This document shows positions 2,796 to 61,400 of a stretch of 64,000 bases of DNA, in pieces. Positions within the stretch are counted from its first letter, which is position 1, and each line of letters begins with the position of its first letter. The position numbers and the translations under genes were made by a program. This DNA is from Selaginella moellendorffii (lineage: Eukaryota; Plantae; Lycopodiophyta): assembly GCF_000143415.4 (NCBI RefSeq), contig NW_003314266.1:1076463-1140462 (forward strand), written 5' to 3'. The notes beneath the pieces were generated by a model. It was not told the DNA's origin. It searched no databases and was given only the letters and a program-made list of their open reading frames with translations.

Positions 2796-4349
2796 TCTTT
2801 GTATAGTGGACCTAAACATTTTTCCTCCACAATAGCTTTGCGCAAGTGTGAGGCAAACAATTCCACTGTGGGGGTTTGCACATTTCAAAGTAAGAATGCA
2901 TATCAATTCACTAGGTTGATTCAGCCATTTCTGAAAGACCTCAAAGATATTCTCCCACTGGTGAGAGTTTTTATTCATAGCAAACAGTGGAAAATAATTA
3001 TGTCATTATTTTACTTTTCTCATTTCATTTCCTCTAGACAGAGATCAGATTCTTACCATGGGCAATGCGGTCTAAGATTTTCATAGCCAGATATAGTGAC
3101 CTACTTATGGCTTGAATATTAAAGATCACAATGACTCGATAGCATAACTTACTAGAGTAGCTCTTTTCCAACAAGTGAAACTCATTCTTCAAGCACTCTG
3201 GAAGACTTCTTGTAAGGAAAAAAAATTGATTTTCACTTGAATGCTCTTATTAGTCATTTTAGATTGTATAATCAGAGGTGATGTTGGTGTAAGGGAAACT
3301 AGTGCCATAAGAAGACTTGATGAAACTTAAGGTGGCTGCTGCCTTCTTTTTCTCCAAAAACTCAATTAAGTGACAATGAAGCCCACCTTTGTTTCATGCA
3401 TGACAGCATTTCTCCACTTTCATATCTAACTTCCATATGTTTGAGGTTGGAAGAGCTATTGGATGGCTCTTCCAGCAACTTTGGGTTGAGTTGGGATGCC
3501 ATGGAGTTGGAAGGAGATTGCCAACAAGGAGGTGAGTGACATATTTGTTTTCATTGATTTACCTTTTGAAAGCCATAGAGCTAATGGTTGTGATGTTGAT
3601 TTTGGTGATTGGCCTTAAGAAATTAGTAAAAGTATGCTCTTTGCACTCCAGCAGCTTACTTCTGGCAAGGCACGAAACAGCAATCAATTATGAGAGATGG
3701 AGATGGACAATGTCAGCTAAGGATTTGCTACATATGACAACCATTTTGAATGGTGATCGGTTGACCAACTGATCATGGTTATTAATTGACCGTGAAAGTG
3801 CCAAGTGACTAACTGGTTCACAACATTTTTCAATAAAAAAATAAACAATATAGAAAATTAAGCAAGGCTTTTTCTACTTATACTTGTGTTATTGCCCCTA
3901 CTTGCAAAATATTTACAAACAAATAGAGACAAGAACATAAGAAAGAGAAGAAGAAAAAAAAGAATGAGAAGATAATAAAAGAGAATTTAGCTTTGAACTC
4001 TAAAGGTATGAGTAAGAATAAGCATATATCACTCTCTGAACTCTACTTTGTACAAATAGTTATAGGTGGGAGAAAAAATGATAAATTTAATCCAAATGCA
4101 TACAACAGTGAATGAGAGTTATTTTTTAGCATGTCTAAGTGTTATTTATATACTACATGATTTTATAACCATTCTTAATTGTTTCATGTTTGTTTATGAT
4201 GAGCGTTACCTAGGTTAGATTTTTTTTTTAGATGCTTAATCTTAAATGTAACTCTATTTTGCTTAAGCTTTCTTCTTTTACCCTACCTAAGATGATACAC
4301 AAGATACAACATTTACTTTTTTATCATTCCCCCACAACAAAGTTATTGC

Positions 4350-6450
4350 CTGTCTTTATGCAGTCAAATTCTCCAAATCTTGCTCTAGGTTGCTTAATTT
4401 GGTCTTCATAGTGACAAGCTCAACACTTCAATGTACATTGTTGAGTTCTTGATGCATGATTTAATTTTCTTGCAATGCATTGGTCTTGGCAATTGATGTG
4501 CTTTACATTGGTGGATGTGAAAGCCAAGATTGCACTCTTGAGTTTTTAGATTATGTGGCATTAATGATTTTGCTTGCCTATAATTCCATCCACTTTCTTG
4601 GTGATTGTTTTGAGGTAGCTCAAGAACTATGCACAATATTTTGTTGTTTCTTTGTCTTTTATTGGTTGCATTAGTTCGTCGACTAGTTGTTTGCTTCCCT
4701 TGATATGTTGAGTGAGCTCCTCTATAAAGCTTCAGACTACTGGCTCGCTTGGTTGATTCGTGGTCTTATGAGTGAAGGTGTAGTTAGCCTTGACTTTGTA
4801 GTGCAGCTGTGGCATCTATTGCTACTATGGCTGCTCATCTCTCTAGATTGATCGACCGAAGGTGTGTTGTTGTTAAATGCATAGATGGACTAGAGAAGAT
4901 TAAACCCGTACTCCTTCAGTTCACTTAAACCCTCTTTTGTAGCTTTATCCGCTTCATCCCATTAAGTTTCTTGGCCGTGATCTTCTTGGCCTAAACTCAC
5001 CTCATTGGCAATGTTTATATCCAATGGTTTTATGGCATCTATAGATGCATCGTGTGTTAGACTTTGTGGCCTAAGTTGTGAAATATCTTTCACAACTTTG
5101 GCATCTATCATTTGCCTAGTGTTGTTTGTTTATATATTCATCACTTCCCTGATGCTCAGAGAGATTTGCATTGGTATCAAGGTTATCTCTATAGATGTAG
5201 ATGAAGCATGACTTTGTTCCTGATCTAGGTGTGGCATTTTATCACCATACTTGCTATGTCTAACTTTTCCATGGCATACTTGGCCATTGAATTTTTGCGA
5301 AATGAACCCTGGAGGTCTTGCAGCTTAGATTTTTGGATTTAGGTGGAGTTTCTATTTTTAGGGGAGATTTTTCCTCACTTAAATCTGTATTATTGGAATT
5401 TTTCTCCATATCCACATCCTTCGCTATCTCAATCAGAGGAGATATTGGAGGTGGTGGCTTAATGGCAAGGTGAGGCATAAGATTCTCTTGAGTAATGTAA
5501 TGCTTATAGATGTGCCACAAAAAAATGAAGATTCCTATCTTCATTTGCCTTCCCTTACCTACATGTAAGGCAATATTTTTCATTTCGGCCACAAATCCAT
5601 TATAAGCGAAATGAGTTATGTTTATTTGCTGTCCAGTTTTAATAGCTTCCAATAGGTGAGCTATTTTAATGCTAACATTTTAAGCAACCGTACTCCCATC
5701 GATGATGGCACATATCATCTTAAGCTTAATATGATAATTGAATTTCAAGTAGGTGAAGTTACCTCCTCATCCAAATGTGTAGTTAAGGAAGATGTATTGA
5801 TCGAGCATGTGATCTTTTTTGCTCATTGTGATTATTTCACCTTCGTTGTCTAGGTGAAAAATCTTAGCAAATTGAATGAGTCTAAAGAGATGGACTCGTC
5901 TGTGGAAAATAAATGCATGCTCCATTGGGTACCATTTTTGCATGAGCTTGATCCCTTGTTTAATCGACATTTTTCCTTCAAATAACTTTGTATAAGTGAG
6001 TAACCAAAAAGCATTAAGACAAAATTTGTCATAAGGAGAAAGCACAAGCTCACTAGACAACTTTACTTTACCATAATCAAGCTCCTCGTCGCTAGACAAT
6101 ATTTCCTTCACATGCTCATCTTGCCTAGGCATTTTTGCCATTCATGGAAATTTGTAGCCAAAACACTTGGGAAACACGCATTGGGAAATGGAGTGCAGTG
6201 CCAATAGAAGTGCCCAAGTGAGATCTTGCATTGACAGTGTTTTGAGAGTGGAGTCGATGGCTTGTGGTGGTGGCATGAGGACAAGATCACTCTGCCCAAT
6301 CGAGAGTGCGCTCAATTCAGTAGGCAACAACAATGGTGTTTATTCTTGTGTTGCCCTAGGTGGCATTCGCTCTTTTGTCAAGGCAAATCCTTCAAAAAGC
6401 CTTTATATTGTTGAAGATGGACTCATTCACACCTTGCTGAAATTGAAATA
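4350..6450 (-). pseudogene. Frameshifted retrotransposon accessory (ORF2/env-like) coding remnant
   Basis: Overlapping minus-strand ORF pieces (5260-5652, 5767-6141, 6142-6333) lying just upstream of the PPT-like tract at ~4330. Confidence 0.4.
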
Positions 6451-7379
6451 AATCTTGGACAAACTAGGAACCCCCTAAGAGAATGTGCTCTTGAACATCT
6501 AGAGGAGAGTGTCAAAGTTCTACTTCTCCTTGGCCTCTAATGCAAGTACCCATTGCCATGCACATCTAGGGAATCTCACTCAATTCTAAGCCATCTCCTA
6601 ACACCTTTAAGGGTTGGGAAATTGGCTTAAGGTTTACTCTTTATTTGTTTCATTGGTATTGGAGCAATATGTTCTTTTAGGGATGGCAGAAGAGATATAG
6701 ATCTTGATGGGGAATATGGCATAAATAATAATGGCCATAACGAGAAGGAAGAAACTCTTAATGATGTTATCATGATATAAGGATGCCAAATTACTAAGGT
6801 TTAGAGAGACATAAAAGAGATGAAAGGTTCTGTTAATCTTATTAAAATTTTCTTGCTTCACATGGGCCCTCAAGGGTTAAATCAATCTCATATCTATGAT
6901 TATAATTAGTGCATTAAACATGCCAAGGATTATGGTATTATGGAATGGAAGTTGTCAGTAAATGTTTGTGATTGCTAGTTGGAGTCAATTGATTTCACAA
7001 CCCTTGAATTTTTTATTTTTGACAAAGCTTATGGGTCATACTTTTTCATGGTGGAAAAACTATATCAAAGTTAATCCAAATTTAACTTCTTGGAGTGATT
7101 TGATTAAAGTTTTCCATGCTTTGTTTGTCAAGAAGTTAGAAGATGTTGATCTTATAAATTAATTACTAGAGATTAGGCAGGTGACTAAGACTTCTCCTTT
7201 TATCTTGGCAAACCATTACAAGAGGGCATTAAGAAGAATGCTGGCAATTCTAGATTTATTTGTGAAGTGCAATAATAGTAATTCATTAATCCAACATAGC
7301 TATTGTTTCCTTAGTTGTTGTTCTAGCAAGAATTGAATGTTGTGGTGGTCTGTCTACATTCAAAAGTTTTAATGAGTCA

Positions 7380-7800
7380 AATAGTGTCTCCATTTATGGA
7401 TGGAATGCAACACACTAATCATCTCTTATTTATAGACTAGCATTCATAATTTGGCCATTGTGAAGCATCAACTCTCAAACACTACAATGTCTATAGAAGC
7501 ACTTCTCCAACCCCAACTTCTGGAGCATTAGTCTCCACTACAAACTTCTGGTTGAGGTATGGGAACATGTTGAATATGCTTTGAGAATGAGATAGTTAAA
7601 ATTATTAAAGAATATTCTTTAAATATTCTTGAATGTGCTAGGCTTAAATACCCTTAAGAAACACACAATCATTATAGAGTATACATCTTTTATTTTAACT
7701 ATGTTAGTATTATGAACCCAACGAATTTAGCACTTTTTTGTCATTATGAAATATTCACTTCATCTTTTTTGGAACTACTATCACTTGACTTGTATTCAAG
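7380..7800 (-). pseudogene. Gypsy reverse transcriptase/RNase H fragment
   Basis: FVVETNAPEVGVGEVLL resembles FVVETDASxxGVGAVLLQ; KK.*IRWVHN...IKDVYSI resembles the start of the RT domain. Confidence 0.65.
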
Positions 7801-8069
7801 CTTTACATGGACCATTGACCTGTGAGATACAAATCCCTAATCCCCAAAGTGGAGTAGAAAGGGTGTACATGGTAGTGGTTGAAATGGAAGTTCAATAAGC
7901 ATAACATGTTTAGACTAAAAGCTCCGACTTGGAAAGTCAAAAATGGGAGTGGAACTTTGAATGAAGTGCTCGAGGGATGAGCACGAAGAAATTGGTCAAT
8001 AAATCTATAAAAAGGGACACAAAAAGAACTGACACATGGCAAGTGTCATAACACATAGAAGTGTTAGGA

Positions 8070-8442
8070 ACAAGTCTGAAAAAGAGTCTAAACAGGAGTC
8101 TGAGATGGAATTCAATATGGACCCAAGATGGAGTCCAAAATGGAGTTCGATATGGACCTGAGATGGACTTGATATGGACTTAAGATGGAGTTCGAGATGG
8201 AGCCAAGATGGAGTCTAAGATGGACCTAAAATGGAGTCCGAGATGGACTCGAGATGAAGACTGAAGTAGTTCGAGATAGATATGAGATGGAGTCCGAGGT
8301 CAAGGCTAAGAAAGAGACTAAGGCTAAGACTGAGACCAAAAGTGAGTCTGAGATCGAGACCAAAATAGAGTCCAAGACCAAGACCGAGACCAAATCCGAG
8401 ACCAAGTCCGAGTCCAAGTCCGAGTCCGAGTCCGAGTCCAAG
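8070..8442 (+). repeat. Degenerate 6/12-bp tandem repeat (GAGTCC/AAGACC/GAGATG)
   Basis: Visible periodicity; produces ESKS/ETKS and GLGL low-complexity ORFs. Confidence 0.85.
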
Positions 8443-9588
8443 GGTAAAGCCCAAAGCGATCATCTCCTAGACCTTGAGGGGTTTAATGAGCTCCAAAAGT
8501 ATAGTAAGGAGAAGACTTTAGTGGAGCCAGTTTGGCTAGGAAAGGCTAATGTGACCAAGGAAAGTTATACTCACGTGATAGGTGATGCTATAACCACTAA
8601 AGAGTCCAAGGCTAAAGTAAACATAAATGCTTAAGTGGGGTAACTTGGTGAAGTGTTTAAGAACTGACTCTAGCTCCCTTAAGAGATTAAATAGTCGATG
8701 CTCCCAATCCAAGTGTGGGTGGCACTATATACTTGGATATCTAGCATGGCTTATCAGAACCTCACTCTAGCCACAAGGCTAAGGCACCCAAAAGCAGAAG
8801 GTGGGAAGAGTATCTATAAGGCTCGCATAGGGCTATAATATTTCAAAATGTTGTCCTAAAGTCCCAAACTATGGAAAAAAAGAGGAGCAATCCTTTTGTG
8901 TAGTGACTAAGGATATAATCATGTGGCAAGGAAATCCCAAAATTCAATAGGACATAATGGTTGGGCCTTCAGGCCCTTACCTAATAGCAATGTTGGCAAA
9001 CACAACTAGGGACAAAATGGGACTTGGTGAGGACCGAAAAAGGGATGTTGGGGAAAGTTATTTCCCATATCTCCTGGCATTTTAAGGATATCAGATAGTG
9101 GTTCTAGGATGACCACTTATGGATGAATGGCCTAGTCTTTGAGAGTTGGGACTATGGCATAGGTGGTCTAGGACTACTAATAAAACAAAGGTAAATGGAC
9201 ATAGCCTTAGTGTAACAACTTAATATGTCGGTAGTACTTTTGGGGTGTCGATTATGGGATAGAATATAGGGAGCACTTAAACCAAGTGCAAAGGTTGAAT
9301 GGCATAAATGCCATTCACGGGGCTAACAAGTCTCCAAACCCGAAATAGGACTTATGAAGGTTGTGAGTGAGATTCTTCCAAGTGGTTAAAAGTGTAGTTA
9401 AATGACTAAAGTAAAACAAAAAATTTAGTCACTTACATAACCCTTCAATGAAATCTCAAAAGTGTGACAAAAGAAAAAATAACACACTCTCCACAAGGAT
9501 AGTTTAGAAATGTCTTTATTATCCCCACAATTTAGAAAGGGTAAAAGAGCTCTAAATCAAACATACCATTTGTAAACTTGGGGTGTTC

Positions 9589-9645
9589 TGTGTATGTGTG
9601 AGAGAAAGAGAGAGAGAGAGAGTGAGTGAGTGAGTGAGTGTGTGT
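9589..9645 (+). repeat. Compound microsatellite (TG)n(AG)n(GAGT)n
   Basis: Read directly from the sequence. Confidence 0.9.
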
Positions 9646-9805
9646 TGCTATTTGGGTAGATGCTACTACTTGCCACCCAACATCTTCAAAAGATGACAAA
9701 TAAGTGCCACAAGCAAATCAATCTTAACCTCACTTTGGTCTGGAAACACTATTAAAAAGTTTTTTCAAGACTAAATCCTTAGCCTCATTACTCTTTATTA
9801 TACTT

Positions 9806-9960
9806 TTGGAACCTCATTTGGACTTGGTCTCAAACTCAATCTCAAACTTGATTTTGGACTCAATCTCGGATCTATTTTTGGACTCGATTTCAGTCTTTGA
9901 CTCAATCTTGAACTTAGTCTTGGACTCGGTCTCAAACTTAACCTCAAACTCAGTCTCATC
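9806..9960 (-). repeat. Second array of the same hexamer repeat family in inverted orientation
   Basis: GGACTC/GGTCTC/AAACTC units are the reverse complement of the 8070-8442 units. Confidence 0.7.
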
Positions 9961-11859
9961 TGACAAATTCTTTATCGTTCTGATCGTGATTTCGATAGAT
10001 CCTTTATTCTATGAGTTGTTTCTTTACAATTATCTTCCCCCAAGTCAAAAGCCATTTTGTTTTGGTGTGAAAAATGTTGGATAGTGGGGAGAGGAAATGT
10101 TAAAAAGAGAATTAGGCTACTTCTACCATAAAGATAACAAGAAAAAAGGGAGGCAAAAATCCAAAGACACTAAATGTAATAGTTTATTCAAGAGGTTGTG
10201 AAGTAAATGATGTTCTAAAATAGAGCAAAATTGTTGCTAAGATGATGTCAAGGGGATAGAATATACCTACAACTAACACAAAGTCAAGATCATGGGTTTT
10301 CTTTTGTTTTAGACTAAATGTGATTAATTATTAGGGGATTAATAACAATTGTAAACCCTTTAAGCAGTTTTCCATTGTGATGGATGGAGACTATAGTGCC
10401 AATTGTGGGAAATTAAATACAAGAGAATGCTTTGATAAGAAACAAAAAATAAATGGGTGGTGTGATGGAAAGCAACATTGGCACTACTAACAAAACTGTG
10501 TTAAAAAGGCAAACCTCTGGATGGTAGTGACAATTAAGACCAAAGCATAAAAAACCTCCAAGTCTCTAAAAAGCAATAGTTTCTCTATGCTCACTTGTTT
10601 TAGAGTTCATGGAGTTTCCCTCCAAGTCTGGACATAAAGCTATGTCCTTCATGAATCATATACCTAGCAAATACGTAATTGTGATAGTAGAGAGACAAAA
10701 TTGCAGTCAAAGTTTTAAGAAGGTTGGATGTGTAATTTTTCAACAGCTATCCATTGCAACTTTTATTTCTCTCTCACTCTTCAAGTTTGCAATGTTTTTG
10801 CTCTCTCTTCTTCTGCCTTCTTGCTTGCTTACAATGGTGGAGCATGCCATGGTGGCTCAGGATCATGTGCCACTTGGAGTTGTTAATTTTTTTGTGCTCT
10901 CCCTTCCATTCTCAAAAGCAAGTTATAAGAATCACAAAAGAATGTTTGTCTTGTGATCATGGCTTCAATGCTGCTTAGATTCTTGAGTTTTGATTCACCT
11001 TTCTATTGCACGATTTTGCCAGTGTAAGACTTCTATAAGAAGCTTTCTTTCCAGTAAATCCACTCCTACCCACTCTATATCTGGCAATTTGAATCAGCCC
11101 CACCCAATCTCTTGGTATATGTTATAGGAATATCAACAAATAAAAGATATTGAAATTGAAAGGATTCCAACTACAATCCTACCACTCTAGATATAGAGCT
11201 CAGACAGCTGTGCATCACAAGTGATAGAGCCAACCTTGCTTGGTAAAACCAAAATGCTTATTATGTGAATCACAGCCCAGTCCTTCAGGTTGGACTCAAC
11301 TTGGAATTGCCATCGCATTAGCTCATCTCTTAGCTGCGTAGCTATAAGATGAGTTAGTGAGATAGTAATGCTCATATGTGCTAAAAAATGCTGATGTTCC
11401 TGCAAAGTGCCACATAACACGTTATGACCATGAACACTATAAATTCTTACAGTCTGCCTTAAAAAACAGCCGATGCAAAAGAGAGGATGTCTCTCTACAT
11501 GTGTGCTACTGCTCTAGCACTCAACAGATCACTACAGTTTCTACATTGAAGCCCCAAATAAAAAGTCAATCAGAGGTCTTACACCATTGTAAGGAAGGCC
11601 GCTCTTGTATTTGAATGGGAAGCCAAGGGAAATAGTGTGACTTCTAAAAAAGCTATTCCATGCAGTAAAAGGAATCCACCATACTAACCTGCAGTGTATT
11701 GGGCATCATGATGAAGGAGATTGCATTGGATGAGATTCTTAATGCGTTCAGCTTGGTAACTTAGCAAACATAACAAAAGACAATAGAGGACACCAGTGCT
11801 TATTTAGATATTATTCGCAACTTTCATGTTGCAGGTGTCTAGCACATTAGATGGAATAT

Positions 11860-12096
11860 TTAGTTGCATCTCCCATAGCCGCGCTGGCAGCCCGCGCCAC
11901 AGAAAGCAGATGTCGATCCGCAGTAGCCAAACTGGCTGCAGCACAGGCCCCGGTTGCAGGAGGCTCTGCCACCCTGACGACCGCAACAGGGACGGGATCC
12001 ACACGCTGCCTGAGCTTCCACCACATTCGCGTGCTCCACCATTGCAACAACGAACATGCACAGGAAGAAAGCAGCGAAAGCACGAAGGGACGCCAT
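11860..12096 (-). CDS. Secreted hevein-like cysteine-rich peptide, copy 2 (78 aa)
   Basis: Identical to copy 1 except M25V in the signal peptide; TATA box at 12158-12167. Confidence 0.93.
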
Positions 12097-12157
12097 TGCA
12101 AAGAGTAGCGCTTTAACTGAGCTGAGCAGTGTTTGATTGAATGGAGAGGCTGGGTAC

Positions 12158-12167
12158 ATTTATATAG
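12158..12167 (-). promoter_or_regulatory. TATA box of hevein-like gene copy 2
   Basis: CTATATAAAT on the minus strand. Confidence 0.7.
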
Positions 12168-14093
12168 TGGGGGGGTGGGCAAGCGAAGTCCTTGGGTTAC
12201 ATCACAACTTTTGAAAATCTAGAGCGCACGTTTGTTCGTTTTGCAATTAAGTATTTTCTATATGAGCACATTGAACGTGAAAAGACTTTAGCTCCATGAT
12301 CTACCAGCCCTATTACGAATATAGGGCGACAAATCCTATCGAATTTTTCGCACCAAAAGACGAAACGCTGGAGGAAGGCGACACTGTGCGCTGTCAGGGC
12401 TCGATCTTGACACATTTGCATTTGAAGTGTGACACAAGACCTCATCGCTTGACCATTGAGCGAAGTTTCGTAAGAAGCATGCGGGTTGATTTCTGTGAAA
12501 GTAGGTTACGTTAACCAAATCAGTAAACTCAAGCTCAGATTGTTTTGGAAAACTAACCGGTTTCAGTGGGGGGATTATTGCAGTCCTTCCGTATGTAGTT
12601 GGGAAGCTTATAACATAGCACAATGTTCAGCCAGCCATCTTCAAAAGACTGCATGTAAATAATTAGACAGAGTGCGAGGCAGTCTTCTGTGCAATGGAAA
12701 TGAAGCTCGCTTGTAAGTTTGTGGTTTGGTTTGCTGGTTTATACTACACATTGTTCGAGCTTGGGAAGAAACCAAAATAGGTTGCTGCATTGAAATGCAG
12801 GTATGATTTCCTTCGCAACGCTCAAGCACGGTCAGCTGCGTGGAAGCAAAATCTCAGGCAGCAGTAACACCTACTCGGGCAGCTCAAGCAGCGCAAGCCC
12901 ACACACACCAGCCACGGAATCAGTTCACTCTGAGACAGAACTGGTGTTGAGATGATAGAATGCTGAATCTCCCGCTGGAGCCACAAAGACAAGGTGAAAT
13001 AAATCCCCCGTGATATAGTCTTCAAGAAAACTCTTACATGAAAGCTAATTTTGCAGGTTGCTGGCTGGTTTCAAGCTTAGAATGGATTGACACTCTTGAC
13101 GGTGCTCGGAGCGGGTCATACCCCTAGACATTTGTCAGGAAAAGTTCCACCAAGCTTTGCCAATTGAATGTCCTTATTCCGATGAATTCTCAACTACCTC
13201 GGTTAGGCCTTACGCAGCTTCTTTCTAAGCTCCTTCTTAAGCTGCATTGGACCAACAGTTAGTGAATGTTAACATACAAATCAGGAAATTACCACTTTTA
13301 CGGAAACCTGGGTTAATTTCTTCATAAGATCCAGACGATGACTCTACCAGGTTCTGGAGATGTTCATTCCAAGTTAAGACATGATTGACATTTGTTGTAT
13401 GAGTTCTCTGGGAAAGACGTTCCAAGTCGCTCACGCATGGCAGCAACTCACAAGGTATCTAGTTAATGCATATCTTACTACAAAATTCAAAACATACCTT
13501 TGATATGAACTTGCTTCAGCTCGACCCCTCTTGACGAAACCAAAAACATCCAAGATCAAGTACTTGTATTAATATTCCGCCCAAACGAATGGATATATCC
13601 GGTCGACAGGGCAAGCAACAGCCCTGCCGCACTTGACGCTGCCTAGAAGATATGTTCATCATTTAGCCAGAAGTCGCCCATCATTAGAACGTATGTTAGA
13701 AAATCCTCTGGAACATGATAGGATTAGATAAGTTAGAGCAAACGGAAAGAAAAGCAAGAATTACCTAAGACTAGCTTCGGTTCTTAAGTATGAATGGGCT
13801 CCTCAACATCGATGCTCCTCCCCATCACATGTGGTGTCCATTTGATCCGTCAACCTCTGGAGCGCGGCTCCACGGCGACCGACCTGTTCAACTCTGCTCT
13901 CTCATCGGTTCTCTTCCGCCTCAGCCTTCATCTTTCGACGCTCCTCATTTAGCCTCCCCAAATCTTTGCGTCTGATACACGTCTAGATCAGCTCGAGCCT
14001 TTTAGCAATCTCAACTGAGCCTCGAAGGCTGGCGAGAAGATATTGTCGGTGATTTTCTTCACCAAAGCGTTCACTCCTGTGGGTTGCTGTTCT

Positions 14094-33102: not shown

Positions 33103-35345
33103 TTAGAGGTCGATCTCGTCAATGCCCAGCATTCTTGGGCCCGGGATGGTTTTTCCAATGGCTTTGCCGCAGAGAATAACGTTTTGCGGGATCCATGTCT
33201 CAGTTCTCGTGGAGTTCTCAGGATTAAACACGCGGGCATAGCCTTCCTGGCCAAGGTACTGGCGTCTCAAGCACTGGGACCGGATGTTCCACATCCCTAC
33301 GTTGTCTACCGAGAAGAGAATCGCCGTCCAGCCTCTCGGGTACACCTACAAGTTGATCAAAGTTGATAGTCAGCGAACAAAATTTCGTTTCTTTTAGTGT
33401 TTTTGGGTGATCGACCAACCTGTGTTGTGGAGCGTGAAACAGCGTCGACCAAGTTGTACTTGGATCGGCTGCTGGGCGACCATGTTTCGTTGAATCCAAA
33501 CCTGGAAGAGCAACCACAATGGATAAGTGATCCAATCCAATCGAGGTCGATCCATACCCGACCACCCAGAAGCTCATCCCGTCCAAATGCCACGACTGGA
33601 TCTCGTTCTCCGGGTTGACGAATACGAGCTCCACAAAGCTCTTGTAATCCAGCTCGAGAACCGACGTCTCCATCACCGGCGAGCCCACGGCACTGGTTCG
33701 CATCGATCCCCGCGTGAAAACTCCGTCGATATTGTAGAAATCCGCGAGCTTGAGCGGGGTATCGGGTGTGAGATACGACTGCCCGTTGATCGCGAACCGC
33801 GCCTGGTTGTTTAGAGTCACGGAGGAGCTCGAGAGCTGGATCACTCTCGTGATGGGAATTTGGCCATAGTGGTAAGATCCTTGCGGGTTGGGCCGCGCGG
33901 CACCGGTGGTCAAATTCCACCTTAAAGAAGAAAAAGTGTCAGTGGGCTCGGGCAAGTTCTCGGTCATACCGCGCGGCACTGCTCGGTCTGGCAAGACTGT
34001 ACCGCGCGGTACTACTTACTTGATAGATAACGCCTGGTTTAGCGAAAAGTTGACGTCCAAGGGATCCGGGCCAGCCGGGATGGTTCCAGATGCTGCAGTG
34101 TTGGAATTTTGGTAGTGAAGAATCGCGACGCCGTTGAGTGAGCCGGAGCTGAATTTGGTGCTTGCGACAATGTAGTAGTCCGCGGGGCTCTGATCCATAG
34201 TGACGAGCACCGAGTAGGATTGCCCGAGATGGATGTCGAGCGAATCGACGCATGTCTTGGCGGTGTAGGAGCCCTCCGTTTCCACCACGCAGAGCTTGTG
34301 GGACTGGATCCGGACGTTGAGCGATTGGGCGGTTCCAACGTTTGAGATACGGAAGCGGTAGATCTTCCCTGCGAGATTGGAAGTGCCCAAGTTGATCGAT
34401 CGAGAAGTTTTTCGCAGGATCGAGTGGGAGTGATGCTTACCAGATTCGACAGTGAACTTCTCAAAGTTGGCATTGCTACCACCCGCAATGTATGGTGCCT
34501 TGCCATTCATAAGAACAACGTTTGGTCTTCCAATACCTTGGCTCTTATCCAGTCGTGATCGGCTCGACTGTTTAATCACACAAAGATTTGTCCACCAATC
34601 TTGATGTGAGATCGTTGCAACAAGAAAAAGAAAGAAAAAAAGAACGCACGCGTTCTTCCACTGACCCGATAGTCTCGAAGCTGCCAATCACCGGCCAAAA
34701 GCGTGAAATCGTCCGCGGGCGGTAGGAAAGGAACGGCAATCACTACGCGATTGGCGATCTGGATTCCACCATAGCCTCCCGCGGCCTTGTGGAAATTGAT
34801 GGAAGGATAGTAGAAGAAGGTCCCGATTTGATCCTTGACTTGGAAATTATACTGCCACGACTGGCCGGGCAAGATCGGGCAATTCGTTCCCGAGACGCCG
34901 TCTTGCCAGGATGATCGCCGCTGCTGGATCCCATTCCTGGATCATGGATCACGAGATTGGAAATGGATTGATGGAAACAAAACCGAAGTGATCATACCAG
35001 TGAAAGAGCAGGGGCTCGTCGAGGCGATTCGTCACGTTGATGTGGAGATTGTTGTTCGTGGTGGTCTTGATCGTGGGTCCTGGAAATTGGTTGTTGATCG
35101 CGATCACCTGGGAAGAACAATGTGAGATTTGAGACCCCAAAGAAACAGAGCATAGCAAATAGTGTGTGGTGTATGCGTGTGATGATTGATTGATTGATCG
35201 ATCTTACTCTTTGTGTGGTGTCCAGCAGTGGCAAATTCTGAAATGTGACTACCCAGTCGAGGAACTGATCTGGATCCGCTGCCTGTGCCGTCGATGCTAG
35301 TGCAAGAACTGCGAGAATCGCGAGGAATTTGGCGATGACGGCCAT
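33103..35345 (-). CDS. SKS: SKU5-similar (SKS) monocopper oxidase-like protein, multi-exon
   Basis: Signal peptide, INNQFPGP, SSWQDGVSGTNCPI, KDQIGTFFYYPS, WNLTTGAARPNPQGSYHYG, DNVGMWNIRS. Confidence 0.94.
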
Positions 35346-36061
35346 GTTTGTCGTCGTGAGGAACAGAGCGCTCTGTTTGAAGAAATGGCGGATCAAATTG
35401 CAGAATTCGAGCGCCTTTCCTATCAGAGCTGTTGAATTTCGCGGCCAAAGATCAAAGACGATGGTGACCGTGGAGTTCCTCTGGCGATTTATAGCTGAAT
35501 TTGCTGAGAGAAGGAGAATTTCAAAAGAAGATGAAGCTTCAAAGCAAGATCGTGCGACTCAAGTTCCGCAATGAGCTGCGTCCAGCGCACATGAACTGAT
35601 GGAGCGCCCAAAACAAAGTCGACGATTCAAGCCGAAGATTCTTGGCAGTAAAAACCGGAATTGATGATAAAAAACACCTCACAACTAGCACCAAAATTCA
35701 TGAAAATTCCGCGCTTAGCCGCAAAGCCAGTTGATCGATCAAGTTACCGATCGACCTAGCTTGCAATTCCGGTGCGAGCGCGTGAGGTTTACTTGCAGCT
35801 CCGCGCCCGCTGCTTTGCACAGCAATTCCACGCGTCCTCTAGAACACACGCAGCGGGCGTGCGTGGGGGCTAGCGGCCGTTGGATGCACTAATCCGCCGG
35901 CCACGAATACATAGCGTGGCGATATCGGCACTGTTGGATGTTAACGCGTTGGACGGACAGTAGGCAAAAGAATAAATAGCCATGGCCACTGTTGCGATTG
36001 TGTCTATATGTTGTTTCTTTCTCAAGATGTTGCGTAAAGTAACGTGCATTGGATGAATGGA

Positions 36062-36366: not shown

Positions 36367-39300
36367 ATGGCGAGGCCAATCTGGTGGAAGGGCGATGAGG
36401 CGGTCACTCTGGATCAATCGCCCTCGCAGAGATCGTCCTACTATGGGGAGGAGGACGAGAACTACGATTTTAGCTTCCAGAGTAGCTTTCAGGCATCGCC
36501 CATGGCTAGAACGATCCATGCGGCCTCTTCGCCAATGGGCAATGCCGGCTTCAGTCCCTCGCAGCTGGGCAATGGTCCGGATCGCGTGTTCGTGGTTCCT
36601 GTCCGGGGATCCGAGACGCCAATCACCAGGTCCAAGATTCCTCCTCCTCCGCGCGGCCGGATGGGCAGCACCACGCCCGAAATCGAGCGCCGGCTTGCCA
36701 ATGCCGAGGCCGGCACCGTCCAGGGCGCTGCGCTGGAGATGTATCGGGTGCTCAAGAAGAATGGATTGGCCGCCCAGGCGGAGAAGGCGATCAAGCGGCT
36801 CAACAGTGGCATTAGCGGCGCGGCGGCGGAGGAATCCCTGCTGGGGATGGAATTCATCCTCAAGGATGGGATCGTGAGCTTCCTCAGGGAGCTCTCCAAG
36901 CTCGCGCCTCCAGTTCCTCAGCAGGTAAATCGATCGCTCGCGAAAATATTTTTAGGGTTCTTCATTTTCCCGTTGTCTACAGGTAGTGAGGTTTTCTGGC
37001 GTGCGCCTCAGCGTCTCGCAAGAACAGGCGCTAGGGTATGAGACATTCGGCGGCAAGCTGCTGGGATGCTTCTTGGGGCCGCTGCGCAATCTACTGCTGG
37101 ACAGGAAGACGATCAAGAGGAAGATCGAGGTGCTCAAGGATCTGGATGGATTTATCATGCCCGGCAGCACTACGCTGCTCTTGGGGCCTCCCGGGAGTGG
37201 GAAAAGCTCGTTGCTCAAGGTATTTCTTCAGCCGCATTCATGTGTTTGCTTGGGTAGAATGTTCTTCTTTGGCGTTTTTTTCCTGGAATCCGTGATGGCC
37301 GTATTCTCATGGTCTTGTTTCCTTCTTCGTTCAAGTTCTTAGATTGTTCCACCGCAAGGTTCTTCATTTGTCGTCTGGGATCTTTCTCTTTTAGTTTTTG
37401 TTTTTTGGTAATCAGCTTTCGACTTTTTCCAGGTGCTCGCCGGGCGATGTGAATCCAACAAAACCACTAAACTACAAGGAATAGTTTCTTACAATGACCG
37501 ACTAGCTTCCGAGGTCGTCCTTACTCGACTCATTGCTTATGTCAATGGACAAGTGAACAGGTATTAAAAGCTTGTAAATCTTCCAGCTCCAGGTACTAAC
37601 ATTGAGCGTTTCTTCAAGGCATCTGCCGTTTCTAACAGTTCGCGAGACGCTAGAGTTTGCTGGGGATTGCACGCAAGGGGTCCGACCAAAGAACTTCAGT
37701 CCCAGCATGCGGAGGTACTTTGCCCAAGCTCTAGTGCAAGGGCAGGATCCATACCTGGAGTATGTTCTTCATGTTCTGGGGCTCAAGGCCGTGGAAGATA
37801 AGCTCGTTGGAATCGGCCAAGACGGTCTAAGTGAAACAAACAGGCACAGACTTACAAGTGCTGAGCTAGCAATCGGGACTTACGCAGTAATGATCTATGA
37901 CCAGCCTTGCTACGAGCAGGACTCGCAGGCAACGTATGATCTCGTCTTCACCTTGCGTGCGATAAGCCGCATACAACGGTCTTCTGCGGTGATGTCGCTG
38001 GTTCAAGTATCTCCAGAAGTTTTCGAGCTTTTTGACCGGGTGATAGTCTTGGGAGATGGACAGATACTTTACCAGGGACCACGACAAGACGTCTTGGATT
38101 ACTTCTCTGTACTGGGGTATGTTCTATAGCTTGGCTTTCGAGTTTATCTTAACATGGGATTTTTTTCTCGCTATGCAGATTTTCGAAACCGTCTCATGTT
38201 GACACAGCTGCATTCTTGCAAGACATTGGAGCAGGAGAAGGCGGTCAATACGTAAAAGGAAACCGGCAACTATATGGGATTGAAGAGCTCGTCGAGGCTT
38301 ACAAATCCTCAGACTTGTACAAAGACATCGTCCGGATAGTGTCTAGTGACGATGTTGCGTTTACGTACTGGGTGGAGCATGAGCCTAGCATTGGTTTGTC
38401 AGTGCGTAAATCCTCAAACGGTGCAGGTAAAGTGTTTGGAAGTGTTTTATTTGTGTTTTAACCAGCCTTGTACATTCATTGCAGAGGTGGTAGTAAGTAG
38501 ACTATCCACTAAAGTCGACCAAGCTCAAGGAATTGAGAGTACTGGGCATATCCAAGAAGGTGACATTGTCACTGGAATTTCTCTGAGGAACGGAAGGATG
38601 CAGTATATTGCAGTAGGATCGAAGATAACCCGGAAGAGCTATGCTGATGATATATCCAAGGTTTTGGAAGGGGCTAGAGGACACGTCCGACTCCAAGTAG
38701 AGCGAAGAGCAACAGAGCAGGAAGTCGAGAGCTCACAACCAGCGTTTGTGCAAACCTGGTGGGAGTCGACAAAAACAGTCACCAAGCGTCAGCTACGATT
38801 TGCAACTCGTCTCAAGATACTTGTTATCTTGCGTCTCATTCAAGTTGGTATCGACTGTTCCTTTCTTCATTCATGCATGATAAGTTTTACAGGTTGTGAT
38901 CTTGGGGATTTTCGGGGGAGCTATATTCTATAGCTTCGGTGGATCTCTTGATCCGGGAGAGATGAACATTGTTCGAGCGATCGGCTTCGTTTCTACTTTC
39001 AGTATTATGCTTGTCAACGTTGTTCAACTTCCGGTGCACATGATTCAGCGGCCGGTTTTTTACAAGCACAGAGCGCAGCGGTTTTTCAGAGTTTCCTCGT
39101 ATTTAGCAGCTCAGAGCATCGTCAACCTTCCACAGTCTATTATGGAGGCAAGGCGCCCATTGCATTTTACTTGTGGATTCTGACCTGGGATTTGTTGTGG
39201 CAGGCCCTTCTGTACAGCATTCCAGTGTATTTTCTTGCAAGACTTTCACTGGAAGAAGCTGGACTTCATTACATTCAGTTCTTTTGGCTATTAGCGTTAG

Positions 39301-41867
39301 TGGCATACATGGGGTCTTTTCTTGTCATTTTTCTGAGTACAATTACTCCAGTTCTCGAAGCTGGGAACGCTTTAGCAGGTTTGTTTTACATTTTTCTTAT
39401 ATTTGGTCTAACTCGGGATCGTGTGTCAGGTTTGGTGGTTTCTCTCGGTTTATTGTTTTCCGGATTCGTTATCTTTCCGAGCTTGACTCCAAGCTACTGG
39501 AAGTGGATGCTTTCGGCCAATCCGCTCCGTTGGGGAAATGTTATATTCTGCATGGCCGAGTTCCTCAATCGCTACCATGAATCTTGCCAAGACTTTCAGC
39601 AACTTCTGTTTTGCCGGAAATATCCAGATCTACCAGTTGGCCGGGCGTACCTCGAGTTTTTCCAGCTTGTTTCGGAGAGAAAATGGATGGCAATATCCTT
39701 CGCAATTATTGCTGCTTCGGTTCTCATTCTGGCGCTCGCTTCTTACTTGGGACTCAGCAAAGTCGTCTTTTCGGAAGTAAGTCCTTCCTTGCCAAGCGAG
39801 CCTGCAAGGAGTTCTTACAAGCAACCGGAGGACAAGCAGAAAGATATCTCTTGGGACGGACTATCCAGAATAACCGAGATGAGCAACTTGCAAACCAAGA
39901 CAGTGTGGGAGAAGAATGGTAGCACCCATGACGACGAAGAGCTTGGCCTTGGGCTTGAACTGCGGGGAACAGGTCACCAGTGGGAGAATTCGCACATACC
40001 CGTGAAAGCAGCCACGTTATCATTCCACCAAGTGAGTTTCTCTGTAAAAGCCGAGGAGAAGATAGTGCTGGACAGGGTCTCGGGATTCGCAAAGCCAGGG
40101 ACAATGCTTGCAATTATAGGGAGCATGGGCTCAGGGAAGTCCACTCTTTTAAGAGTTCTCGCAGGACGAACTCTGCCATCGTCAAGTGGGGAACTTATCT
40201 CGGGTGAAGTGCTGGTGAACGGATTCAATCTGAGTAGCAACACCTTCCGGCGGCTGTCTGGTTTCGTGGAGCGAGTGGACGCTCATCAGCCATTCTTGAC
40301 AGTGAAGGAGTCACTCGATTTCAGTGCCGGTCTTCGTTTTGGAGGCAGCACAACCCCCGGCCGCCGGGCCTTTCACGTAGAGCTCGTCCTGGAACTTATG
40401 GGCCTCGTCGGCGTCAAAGACCAGCTAGTGGGATCTCTCAAGTTTTCAAACGGGAAGATCTTTGAGCTCGCCAAGAAGCTGACCATCGCTGTGGAGCTTG
40501 CAGCAAATCCCAGCATGATTTTTCTCGAGGACCCGACGTCCGATCTCGACAGCGTCGCCACCAGGAACATCCTGTTCGCCATCCAAACGGTTGCAGCATC
40601 CGGCCGCACTGTTATCAGCACGATCCAGCAGCCGAGCGCTAGAGTTCTCAGTGCCTTCAACAACGTTCTTATTATGAGACCCGGTGGGGAGCAAGTTTAC
40701 TTTGGTCCCGTCGGCTGGAACTGTGGCCAGCTTCTGGAATACTTCACGACGATGTCGAGCGCTCCAAAGTACGAGCAGAGCCAGAACCCGGTGACTTACA
40801 TGTTCGATATCATCCGAAAGGACGAGCAAAACCTCGGCCTTGTCTATCGAGCGAGTTCTCTGGGAAGCTCCAACGCCGAAGAACTCAAGAAACTCCGGAA
40901 ACAGTACCGGAAGAACTCGTTCTGGCCGGCGCTGGATTCGACTTACGCCGCTCCTTACTCCAAGCAGGCCTGGTTGGTCTTCCTGAGAACACAGAGGTTC
41001 CTCTACCGCAACGTCCAGTACACGTTTGGACGGCTCTCCGGGTCGATCGCTCTCGGCCTTTTGCTCGGCTCGGTCTACTACAAGATCGCCACCAACGATA
41101 CGTTCTCGGTCACGTCCCGGTCGCTTTTCATCTACATCCAGGTGATGCTGCTGGGTGTGATCATCGCCAACAACGTCGTCCCCCAGCTTGGAACGGACAG
41201 GTTGGTCTACCACAGGGAACAGCGAGCAGCGATGTACGCTCCAATCTTCTATCCGGTGTCTTGGGCGATCGCGGAGATCCCATACCTGTTCATCGCGACG
41301 CTGGTGTTCGTGGGGATCTCAAACGGGCTGGCAGCGATCGCGACGCAGAGCGTGAGCAGCTTCGTCACGTACTGGCTGTGCCTCTTCGTCTTCACCACCA
41401 CCGTGATGTACTTCGGTATGTTCATCACCATCGCCACCCCGGTTCCAGTGCTGGCGGCGTTCGTGGTGTCCATCACGAACTCCATCTGGGTCTCGGCCTC
41501 CGGCGTGATCGTCCCAAAGGCCAAGATGGGATTTTGCGAGTGGGTCTTCTGGGCGAATCCATTCCAGTACGTGACGCACGCGCTGACGAGCGTGAGCTTC
41601 TTCTGCGACACCGCGAGCGCGGCGTGCGCGAGCTGCCGGGTGGGCGATGCGAATTCGTGCGCGGGATGCCACTGCCCGCGGCTGCTCAACGCCGAGAGCT
41701 CCGATCCGGGGAGCTTGCCGGTGTTCGTGTGGGATCGATTGAGCTCGCAGCGATCGCTGGAGGTGGAGAGGGTCTCGCTGGATTTCGTCGCTCTGGGCGG
41801 GATGAGCGTCCTCTTCGCGCTGCTTTCTTTCCTCGCCTTCGTGTGGATGAAGCACAACAGAGGATGA
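36367..41867 (+). CDS. ABCG: Full-size ABCG (PDR-type) transporter, atypical (PDZ-like insert, degenerate NBD motifs), multi-exon
   Basis: NBD1-TMD1-NBD2-TMD2 order: [70 protein letters not shown]. Introns restore the frame, including a probable GC-AG intron at 39148-39203. Confidence 0.93.
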
Positions 41868-57849: not shown

Positions 57850-59960
57850 AACCAGAGCTACTTCAAAGAGCTCATATTCTTGAAAAAACCTGGCTATAGA
57901 AATGAAATATAAAGTATTATGAACCCCAATATAGATCAAACATTGAAACATCGATGACCTAATCAGAAAATGTATTTTATCCTATTGACTTGGTGTAGTA
58001 TCATAACTATTAAGGCTGCACTGTGTTCTTTCTATAGCTATTTTCTTCTATGTTCATGTGTTTATTATTTGTGTGTCATTTGTAAGTTTTGATAGTGAAT
58101 ATAACTAGAATATGCTTGAATATTCTAGGATATTCAAATATCTAATGGTTGTTATTTATTTAGATTAATCTTGTATTTATAATTTATAAATATGTTTCTA
58201 ATGTATAAACTTTCCAAAACACTTCCTAGTATAGTTTAGTTTATTCTACCATCTACTGGTTGATATTCAATAAGATTAATCTTGTGTTTATAAATTATAA
58301 GCATGTTTGTAATTTTTGATTAATTAATTTATTAAATAAGAATAACATTACTATTAAGAAAACCAAGTGTTGCTACATGCAACATGCAGCAAATTTTTTT
58401 AAAAAAAAGTTTTATCCCATTAAATCATCTTTAATTACTATTTAACATATTTTGATTCCTTGCTAGTATTTAAATATGCATGCTAGAAAAATATATTTAC
58501 AATATAAATAAATAAGTATATATACTATCTAGTGGTGTAAGATCTAAAGAGAGACATACACACACTTATATATATTTTCTTTCTTAAATAGTCACTAATT
58601 ATAGTATTATAGCATATGGACCATCCACTTGGGGCTAAATCATTCTTATATATGACAAAAGGTCTAAACCCCAATTAATGTATTTATTTTTATATCTAAA
58701 ACACTCACACTGGTAGAGGTAAAAGGTATTATAATTTATTTCTTGAAGGCAAAGCTTTTTAGTAGTGTTTTACTCTAGTGTTCAGGATTATTTTTATTCT
58801 TTTTAAAATCTAAATCTGTATTAACTTTTTGCAAAATCTAGAATTCTAGCTATTATTATATTTAGTTTTGATTTTCATTTTAAATCTTCATTACATTCCT
58901 TTCTTCCACCATACCATGCTGTCACTGATTAAAGAGTATATCACTTGAAGTTGCTAATGTTATTTTATTGGATCAAACTTTGGTGTTGTGATGTATGATT
59001 ATGTTGGCATTGCACCCATCCTTCATGTATTACTATTTCTAACTTTTGTGAGACATGATTACACAAATTTTTTTGTTCTCAGTGTTTTGCCATCTATTGT
59101 TGATATAAAGCATGACTATCACATTAATTGAAAAATTATGGATGATGCAATTTAGTTTTTGGAAAATGTTCAAAGATCAAATTTATAAAAAGATGATATA
59201 TATGAGCTCGAGTGGATGGATTGTGATGATGAGCTTGATTTATATAGAAATAATTTTGGAGACTAAATAGAAATTTCATGAGGTATATATTAATCCTTCA
59301 ATTTGCCATTTGATCATTTCTTTTTACCTTTTAATCTTTCCCAAACTTTTTATATCCAAACCACTTTCTTGTATTTCTAGCATTTTTCCTTATTTGTAGT
59401 GTTTTTGTCCTTTGGCATATTGATTATTTATGACTTTTATAATTGTTATTCTTAACTTAGTATTCCTCCTCATACTAATCTTGATATTAAGTATGTGCAT
59501 GAAATTGAAAATTTTACTTTTGTTTCGTTAACAAAGTCTTTGATTAGTTCTAGTGTTAAATATTCACCTATTTCAAAAATTGAGTTACTTTGACTAGAGT
59601 TTTGGGTTGAATGTATATCCCTACTTATAAGTGTCATAAAGAATCTTTATTTTACTATTGTTATTAAAGAATTTATGTGTTCCTTTGAGATTATGGACAT
59701 TTATATTAATTTTCTCATTTCGAAGTGTTGAATTATGTGTTGAATAAGTTGAGCACTGTGAATCTTTTGATTATATTATAATGGCTGAAGTATTTTATAA
59801 TAAATCCTAAACTTTGAGTATATATATTTTTTATTTTCCTATTTCCACATTGATAATTACTGAAGATTCCTTTATTAATCTTTTTTTATCCATTTTTTTT
59901 CTTCCACTCCTCAATTTTTCTTGTTTTCTCCTCTTTGCCCTCTTGCATCCATATAAAAAT
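57850..59960. other. Very AT-rich, ORF-free block, probably a decayed transposable element
   Basis: Abrupt composition change; no ORF >60 aa in 2.1 kb; no termini recognised. Confidence 0.45.
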
Positions 59961-59989
59961 TAATAACACTGAAGCAACTCTATTTTAAA

Positions 59990-61400
59990 TTGGTTTGTAC
60001 TTTCAAAAAAGAGTCAACCAAGGATGCCATAGACATTTTGAGTCCGGTAAAAGTTCGTGGTGGTAATTCACGACTGCATCGCACAAATGATGCCCCATGG
60101 AGCAGCTTGCAAATCGACGTTCTGGCAAACATGCTGGCTGCTTCTATACGTGGTGGCGATGCTTTAGCTGCATGGCGTGCAGCTTCATCCACTTATCACA
60201 CCACATGCACAAATTTGCCTTGCCACTGCTTTGCCAACAGCTGCGGCCAAACTCCCAGGTGGGACACGGTCTTCAGTTCCAGCGCTCCCTTTCCTCAGGT
60301 AACTTGACGCTTTACGTTTGATCTTCTTCTTGACTGACTCAGTTTTTTGCAGGTAGCATTCGTTTCCTCAGGAAAGCTCGCAAATGGACTTTATCAAACG
60401 GAATCCCAGGAAGAAGGATTGGTGGAGAGGGAGCAGCTCATCCGATCCTTATATCTACACGCCGTTTTCAGAGAGCCGAAAAAGATTCAGCTCATCTGGA
60501 TAGTTGAAGTTCTTGTTGAAGTTGCAAATCCTTTGTGCCTTCGAAATCCACGTTGAGAGTATATGCATCAGCCGGGGGAATTCGAGGCATTTCCACAGTC
60601 CTTTGTCTTACCTCCGAATGGATCGAAAGTTTTGTCACTCGCTGGAAGGCCACGTTCGACCGGGTCACTGACAGTACGGGGATACTTTGTGAACTACAAC
60701 GGCGTTGTTACCGAGCACTGTTTTGGGGGCACAAATGCTGAGAGAGGCTTGTTCCTGGAAAATCCATTCCGAAGCTCGGGCAGAAGTGGGTTAAAGCTCC
60801 GAAACAAGCCTCTCCCGGACATCAAAGTTATCCCTCCACTGCCGTCTCTAGTAGTGGACGTTGAGAGGGCGTGGTAGTTATATACGAGGGGGAGGTTCGA
60901 AACATGACGATCGAGCTTTGCAACATTGGTTCCGTGCCAGTTATAGAGGCGAACATATCAATGGTGGCAAGGCGCCGCGAGCGCAGAGGAAGAGAAAGTC
61001 ACTTCACTAAATCTTGGACAAGGAAGCTTTTCTGCAAGTCCATTATGCAGGTACATAGCCAGTTTATCTTGTGGAACTAACCAAAGGACCTTTTCACAGG
61101 TTCTCCAACACGGACGAAGAACTCTCTCTCGGTAGGCGGCTGAGTAGTCGTTTGAGGCTTCAAGTTCTTCAAGGCCTTCGTCTTGTGAATTCACGGCTGC
61201 TGTCGATGGAGATTCATCTCCAACTAAGCAGTACTCTCCGCAAGGCCGAAGCAAACGCCACACTGAGAATGGATCCTTACAGGGGAACCTCCAAGTTCTC
61301 GAGCTAGAGCTGTGGAATGGAACGGATGCTTTCTCCACCACGAAAGCTGTACTCGAGCTTGACTTCATGGCAACAAGCTCCGGTCCCTCGTCCGGAAGTG
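59990..61400 (+). pseudogene. TRS120: TRAPP II subunit TRS120/TRAPPC9 internal fragment
   Basis: WSSLQIDVL..IRGGDALAAW, LIWIVEVLVEVANPL, FEAFPQSFVLPPNGSKVLSLAG, PFRSSG..IKVIPPLPSLV, IYEGEVR, GRRL..LQVLQGL; many frameshifts, introns retained. Confidence 0.85.

Follow-up and report, generated by a model that had tools for sequence, protein, structure and literature searches.

A PDZ-like domain embedded in full-size ABCG transporters appears to mark an overlooked, ancient plant lineage

A gene of the lycophyte Selaginella moellendorffii that encodes a full-size transporter of the ABCG family raises the question of what an additional segment of roughly 100 residues could be doing at a position where canonical full-size ABCG proteins of the pleiotropic drug resistance (PDR) type have only a short connector. 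The gene (positions 36367-41867; this and all other features are on the forward strand unless stated otherwise) is located in the window analyzed here, a stretch of 64,000 nucleotides from contig NW_003314266.1 of the RefSeq assembly GCF_000143415.4 (positions 1,076,463 to 1,140,462); it consists of 9 exons and encodes a protein of 1631 amino acids. A Pfam search with this protein detects two ABC_tran and two ABC2_membrane domains that alternate in the order nucleotide-binding domain (NBD), transmembrane domain (TMD), NBD, TMD, i.e., the reverse, duplicated topology on a single polypeptide that is shared with Pdr5, Cdr1 and the plant proteins ABCG29-43. The segment lies between NBD1 and TMD1, and a first-pass annotation, made from the nucleotide sequence alone, interpreted it as a PDZ-like domain inserted in an ABCG/PDR transporter. 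Structural models of moderate confidence indicate that the segment likely adopts a PDZ-type fold, although its similarity to the PDZ families falls below the Pfam profile thresholds (see below).

The domain is encoded in two parts that were delineated from the secondary structure of the model and the alignment of the family. The N-terminal part (positions 38354-38426, residues ~533-556) includes strand A, the S-I-G-L loop that occupies the x-Φ-G-Φ position, and strand B. The C-terminal part (positions 38485-38711, residues ~557-632) includes strand C, the short helix A, strand D with the G-D-I-V-T motif, and strands E and F, which carry an invariant Tyr and an invariant Q-x-E-R motif, respectively, and are separated by the long helix B. 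Two AlphaFold2 models were obtained, one for the Coptis orthologue (from an alignment of 28 sequences) and one for the domain encoded in the window (residues 527-640, from an alignment of 41 sequences). In both models, DSSP assigns the succession βA-βB-βC-αA-βD-βE-αB-βF, the order of the six strands and two helices of a non-permuted PDZ domain, and in the model of the window domain, DSSP bears out the first-pass assignment of three strands (B, C and F), of helix B and of the G-D segment. Helix B spans ~17 residues in the model, which is longer than usual for PDZ domains. When the models were compared to the PDB using Foldseek, the top 50 matches of each consisted entirely of PDZ domains, with probabilities of 0.77-0.99 for the Coptis model and mostly 1.00 for the window model, and with target-normalized TM-scores that are mostly in the range of 0.45-0.60.

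Sequence profiles give a weaker, although consistent, indication. When the 41 aligned members of the family were scanned singly, the PDZ families were the only recurring ones in Pfam (PF00595 in 8 members, PF17820 in 4 and PF13180 in 3). In a search of 1.84 billion representative proteins, the family profile matches (E=1.3e-7) a protein of 1858 amino acids encoded in an ENA metagenome contig (P0156), which Pfam identifies as a multi-PDZ protein (1.4e-25). Starting at the G-D motif and continuing through the last strand, the seven repeats of this protein all align in register with the ABCG insert, and hhalign matches them to the family over 61 columns that extend from helix A through strand F (probability 93.1%, E=3.1e-7). 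The canonical eukaryotic PDZ domains (PF00595; e.g., those of PSD-95, Scribble, MPDZ, Dishevelled and Par-3) have the same order of strands and helices as the insert and share with it the x-Φ-G-Φ motif ahead of strand B, the G-D dipeptide ahead of strand D, helix B and the final strand of alternating hydrophobic residues. A resemblance to ribosomal protein L23 that surfaced in a profile search of the PDB sequences (E=0.54) was dismissed as noise; in the same search, a PDZ domain of MPDZ was found with E=1.4.

The location of the insert and its absence from related transporters are clear from the full-length alignment, in which the oomycete and fungal proteins of the PDR type show a gap of ~95-115 residues or columns. 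This gap is located downstream of the last (C-terminal) helix of NBD1 and upstream of the elbow helix, the element ahead of the first transmembrane helix (TM1). The same proteins align with the Selaginella protein in the elbow helix and the TMDs; the structures of Cdr1 and Pdr5 align with its NBD1, and this alignment ends before the insert. The insert is also missing from canonical plant PDRs (Arabidopsis, Medicago and Cryptomeria), a Phytophthora protein and a chlorophyte PDR. Thus, the position between NBD1 and TMD1 and the lack of such a domain in canonical plant PDRs, both of which were part of the first-pass annotation, hold in the alignment.

Within land plants, the insert is widespread. 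The segment from the window is 42-52% identical to those of the angiosperm orthologues, far beyond chance, and across long land-plant ABCG proteins (about 1.5-1.8 thousand residues) the identity within the insert is 42-58%. Among spore plants, the insert is present in the liverworts Riccia and Calypogeia, in Selaginella (including a paralogue) and in the ferns Adiantum and Ceratopteris; among seed plants other than monocots and eudicots, in the conifer Cryptomeria, in Amborella and in magnoliids; among monocots, in Dioscorea and several grasses; and among eudicots, in many species, including Vitis, Camellia, Coffea, Hevea, Eucalyptus and Coptis. The combination of an ABCG transporter with a PDZ-like domain is accordingly not peculiar to the Selaginella genome. 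When a query consisting of NBD1, the insert and TM1 was used, the members of the family covered 97-100% of its length, compared to ~55-65% for the canonical PDRs, those of Arabidopsis and other Brassicaceae among them, in which the alignment is broken at the insert. The high-scoring group of this search contained no proteins from Brassicaceae, so, judging from the ranked list of matches, Arabidopsis appears to have no member of the insert-bearing lineage.

The exhaustive profile search of the 1.84 billion representatives yielded 28 proteins at E<=1e-3, nearly all of which are members of the family or fragments that correspond to single exons. Matches of ~100 amino acids could have been stand-alone PDZ-like proteins; this was rejected, given that the two that were examined are located on contigs with ABCG-like exons. 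One of these, a eukaryotic metagenome contig from JGI (L003) that is probably a fragment of a bryophyte genome from an environmental sample, encodes in positions 3600-13700 a multi-exon full-size ABCG with the PDZ-like exon; the aligned pieces of this ABCG and of the Riccia protein are clearly collinear and show 34-85% identity. On the other eukaryotic metagenome contig (L002), the ABCG matches are few and weak. As the short matches are exons of ABCG genes, clearly so on the former contig and weakly on the latter, the profile detects the domain only in ABCG proteins, with the exception of the multi-PDZ protein P0156. A separate case is a protein of 220 amino acids from the genome assembly of the lizard Phrynocephalus forsythii (P0152), a fragment of a plant-type ABCG that covers NBD1 and the insert, each only in part, and that is probably a contamination.

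In the phylogenetic tree constructed using FastTree after deletion of the insert columns, all the sampled insert-bearing proteins (15/15) form one clade (support 1.0) that falls outside the canonical plant PDRs, the chlorophyte PDRs and the stramenopile ABCGs; the tree was rooted on the fungal sequences, and the root is uncertain. This grouping, obtained independently of the insert, suggests that the domain was acquired once. The transporter of the window is a full-size ABCG, as initially assumed, but differs from ordinary PDRs in its membership of a separate, early-branching lineage with non-canonical NBD motifs; in the window protein, the signature and Walker B are non-canonical in each NBD. 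Neither the placement in the tree nor the domain content assigns it to the canonical land-plant PDR clade (ABCG29-43 type), and the PDR-specific families PF08370 (PDR_assoc) and PF14510 (ABC_trans_N) are not among the Pfam matches of the window protein. An early-diverging full-size ABCG group of Viridiplantae, denoted V1-Type, has been described in charophytes, mosses, Selaginella and Amborella and stated to be absent from all other angiosperms (Cho et al., 2020; PMC8359288). This group shares the deep branching and the taxon pattern with the insert-bearing lineage and, as far as can be judged from these two features only, is probably the same; the differences are that no PDZ domain is mentioned in that article and that the insert-bearing lineage is represented also in many magnoliids, monocots and eudicots. 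If the two are indeed the same, the statement on the absence from angiosperms (PMC8359288) no longer holds, with members present in many angiosperm orders.

Taken as a whole, these data are best explained by a domain with the PDZ fold that was acquired once and serves as a built-in module at the connector between NBD1 and TMD1, an explanation that we consider probable, with the PDZ assignment itself being supported at moderate strength. A series of observations weighs against it. The confidence of the AlphaFold2 models is only moderate (predicted local distance difference test, pLDDT, of 66.5 for the Coptis domain and 65.1 for the window domain; predicted template modeling score, pTM, of ~0.6), the Foldseek E-values are only 5e-3 to 1e-1, and the root mean square deviation from the PDZ structures is 4-7 Å. 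No Pfam PDZ model reaches the gathering threshold for the window domain or for the members of the family: the best member has E=0.0036 with PF00595, under the cut-off, the domain from the window itself has E=0.23 with PF13180, and there is no Pfam match at all when the two exon pieces are searched separately. The profile search of the PDB sequences yielded nothing significant, and the score of the P0156 match is the sum over seven individually insignificant repeats that are themselves divergent PDZ domains. Finally, the putative groove deviates from that of canonical PDZ domains. The x-Φ-G-Φ loop ahead of strand B (S-I-G-L in the window, G-L-G-L in the family consensus) is present in most lineages, and the hydrophobic positions are kept in nearly all sequences, but the Gly is retained in 23 of 34 sequences and lost in the remaining 11, where the replacements include Arg, Trp, Leu and Glu. 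The position four residues upstream of this loop, usually occupied in PDZ domains by Arg or Lys, which helps to bind the carboxylate of the ligand, is an acidic one in the insert, with Glu found in the window and in 26 of 31 sequences, and Arg in 1; the start of helix B is variable across the family.

A further difference from canonical PDZ domains, in addition to being embedded in a membrane transporter rather than in a soluble scaffold, is the presence of invariant residues specific to this family. Across the 41 sequences, six columns are invariant, namely G56, D57 and T60 in strand D, Y71 in strand E, and Q101 and R104 in strand F, whereas G75 and E103 are nearly invariant. These residues (G-D..T, Tyr and Q-x-E-R) are located outside the canonical ligand groove, which suggests that the most constrained surface of the domain is an interface common to all members of the family, the simplest candidate being another part of the same transporter. 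Under the scenario that we propose, an independently folding PDZ-fold domain would have been gained once, at the latest early in the evolution of land plants, by an early-branching full-size ABCG lineage, in the cytosolic stretch that connects NBD1 with the TMD1 elbow helix. Because short linkers hold the domain between NBD1 and the elbow helix at the membrane surface, it would most likely be an intrinsic module for interaction or regulation at the coupling point, where the movements of the NBD are passed to TMD1. The invariant face would contact another part of the transporter, and the partly conserved groove between βB and αB may bind a peptide segment that could come either from a partner protein or from a disordered stretch of the transporter itself.

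The alternative that fares best, and that was put forward in the first-pass annotation, is that the insert is a classical ligand-capturing PDZ domain, so that the protein would be a fusion of a transporter and a scaffold that recruits partners via their free C-terminal tails. This is compatible with the predicted PDZ fold, the retention of the x-Φ-G-Φ loop from liverworts to angiosperms, and the normal places of the G-D motif and helix B. Nevertheless, the Glu ahead of the loop, the losses of the loop Gly and the variability at the start of helix B, the element that sets the ligand class, argue against canonical capture of C-terminal peptides, and so do the concentration of the invariant residues on other elements and the sub-threshold similarity to the Pfam PDZ families. 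The capture of free C-termini by the groove hence seems to fit the pattern of conserved columns less well than does the built-in module; the scaffold mechanism that recruits C-termini is somewhat disfavored, and a classical scaffold of this kind appears the less likely form of the domain, so we regard this alternative as unlikely overall. ABC transporters under the control of PDZ scaffolds outside the polypeptide, such as CFTR with NHERF, present a different arrangement: the transporter carries a C-terminal ligand motif, and the PDZ domain belongs to a separate protein. Both systems connect a PDZ-type interaction with the regulation of an ABC transporter, but in the insert-bearing proteins the PDZ-like domain is a part of the transporter polypeptide. 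The possibility that the C-terminus of the transporter itself (K-H-N-x-x) is an intramolecular ligand of the domain was set aside because tails of the N-H-Q-K-R type are also found in oomycete PDR-type proteins that have no insert, and because the tail does not end in a hydrophobic residue.

The nucleotide-binding sites of the lineage are also unusual. In NBD1 of the window protein, the Walker A motif is intact, the signature is the non-canonical L-S-E-T-N, and Walker B reads Y-D-Q, so that the catalytic Glu is missing; in NBD2 (positions 40071-40600), Walker A is canonical, Walker B has the sequence L-E-D, Gln replaces the His of the H-loop, and the signature is degenerate. The canonical Walker B (h-h-h-h-D-E) and an LSGGQ-type signature are accordingly found in neither of the two composite sites. 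The same tendency is seen in the core of the clade: NBD1 has the conserved Walker A, the Y-D-Q variant of Walker B and a signature of the I/L-S-[DE]-x-[DN] type instead of SGG, whereas NBD2 has a degenerate signature and variable Walker A and B motifs, with the Walker B being L-E-E-P in angiosperms and the canonical D-E-P in Calypogeia, Adiantum and Cryptomeria. In the Riccia member, the insert is present although all the motifs are canonical, which suggests that the insert predates the degeneration of the motifs. As part of the scenario proposed above, and to the extent that such motifs predict activity, the ATPase cycle of this lineage seems to be unusual and may depend on the PDZ-like module. 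Under a more radical interpretation, the lineage could have swapped the canonical motifs of ATP hydrolysis for the built-in PDZ module and, comparable in spirit to repurposed ABC proteins such as CFTR and SUR, would function at the membrane as a regulator, receptor or scaffold gated by a ligand or a partner, not as a pump for drugs or metabolites; the PDZ domain would then transmit the binding of a peptide or protein to the interface of NBD1 and TMD1. We view this radical interpretation as quite improbable.

The insert might also be a lineage-specific structural element that only resembles a PDZ domain, due to convergence or to a bias of the predictor toward PDZ-like sequence patterns, and that functions without any ligand, as a rigid spacer or as an element that couples NBD1 to TMD1. 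The moderate confidence of the models, which were derived from shallow alignments (28-41 sequences), the insignificance of all the Pfam and PDB sequence matches, and the location of the strongest conservation off the canonical groove are in line with this possibility. It is difficult to reconcile, however, with the recovery of none but PDZ domains among the 50 best structural matches for two models built from different queries, the recurrence of PDZ alone among the Pfam families, and the independent, in-register profile-profile match to the PDZ repeats; we accordingly consider it very improbable. The weakest alternative, an annotation or splicing artifact whereby intronic, pseudo-exonic or disordered linker sequence would be mistaken for a domain, is already contradicted and can be virtually discounted, given the maintenance of the reading frame, splice sites and sequence identity across land plants, the invariant columns, the ordered secondary structure predicted by the model, the stop codon that retention of the intron would introduce and the agreement of two independent annotations, the last two of which are described next.

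The gene was assembled from tblastn matches combined with a homology-guided scan of GT/GC-AG splice pairs, and the translated nine-exon model is identical to the S. moellendorffii protein XP_024525467.1 (named 'pleiotropic drug resistance protein 1'). Based on the splice search and this identity, the exons occupy positions 36367-36924, 36983-37219, 37433-37560, 37619-38116 and 38179-38426 (exons 1 to 5), and 38485-38843, 38893-39147, 39204-39378 and 39430-41867 (exons 6 to 9). The intron that separates the two parts of the PDZ-like domain (positions 38427-38484) is a 58-nucleotide, phase 1, GT-AG intron in the loop between strands B and C, with gcag|gtaaag as the donor (38427) and ttgcag| as the acceptor (38484); it contains an in-frame stop, so its retention would truncate the protein. 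In the splice scan against four homologues, 38427/38484 was the best pair, with a weaker GTGCAG donor six bases upstream (38421) being equal in score. The JGI protein EFJ33605.1 and the RefSeq protein contain the identical spliced insert segment, with the same splice at 38427-38484. The intron and the linker peptide between NBD1 and TMD1 were both read in the first-pass annotation from the nucleotides; the former is borne out by the splice sites, the scan and the two public annotations, and splicing reproduces the latter exactly. Open reading frame fragments from grasses, eudicots and a bryophyte-like contig begin at the point that corresponds to this intron, which suggests that its position is old. 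An origin of the domain by exon shuffling was rejected: the boundaries of the domain in the window do not coincide with introns, and one intron is located inside the domain.

Three further features of the gene model affect the region that follows the insert. The 51-nucleotide GT-AG intron at 39379-39429 is in frame within a long open reading frame of 898 amino acids and is removed in RefSeq; since it remains open in frame, it is invisible when open reading frames are read directly, and the 17 residues that it could encode are missing from all homologues. At 39148-39203, the best-scoring junction is a GC-AG intron (donor GAG|GCAAGG), which is required to obtain the RefSeq protein. The older JGI protein EFJ33605.1 lacks 31 residues encoded in 39055-39147 that are present both in RefSeq and in the model assembled here, which is probably a difference between gene models in TMD1.

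The remaining domains of the protein are arranged around the insert as follows. NBD1 (positions 37121-38233, residues ~233-492, encoded in exons 2-5) was delineated by alignment with the NBD1 of Cdr1 and Pdr5 and from the motif tables. Downstream of the insert, positions 38712-38843 encode a short acidic linker, the elbow helix and the start of TM1, where the full-length alignment shows that ordinary PDR-type sequence resumes. TMD1 (38769-39563, residues 652-864; Pfam ABC2_membrane) is interrupted by three introns and is followed by the core of NBD2 (40071-40541, residues 1034-1190; ABC_tran) and by TMD2 (40965-41594; ABC2_membrane). Elsewhere in the window, a neighboring multi-exon gene for a multicopper oxidase (SKU5-like) is located on the reverse strand at 34016-35400 (Pfam Cu-oxidase, E=4.5e-34 for the open reading frame of one exon), and the region 58001-60000 is strongly AT-rich, with a GC content of 0.256 compared to about 0.45-0.55 in adjacent windows.

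No published description of an architecture that combines ABCG and PDZ domains was found in open-access papers and preprints, nor anything relevant under the accessions of the gene, in line with the first-pass annotation, which knew of no such description, although annotation at the level of databases may already exist. The studies of plant full-size ABCG proteins have dealt almost wholly with the canonical PDR clade and with Arabidopsis. The present analysis delineates another lineage of these proteins, one that branches deeply and is represented across plants, in liverworts as well as in crops and trees (Vitis, Coffea, Hevea, Eucalyptus, Camellia and some grasses, among others), and the embedded PDZ-like domain appears to be the mark of this overlooked, ancient plant lineage. 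A PDZ-fold domain in the connector between NBD1 and TMD1 would be a structural hallmark that is present in no solved ABCG structure, and it would add a PDZ-type domain of the non-permuted variety to the repertoire of land plants, where, to our knowledge, such domains are considered rare. For this uncharacterized transporter family, the boundaries of the domain, the invariant residues and the loop, which can be mutated, provide a testable handle.

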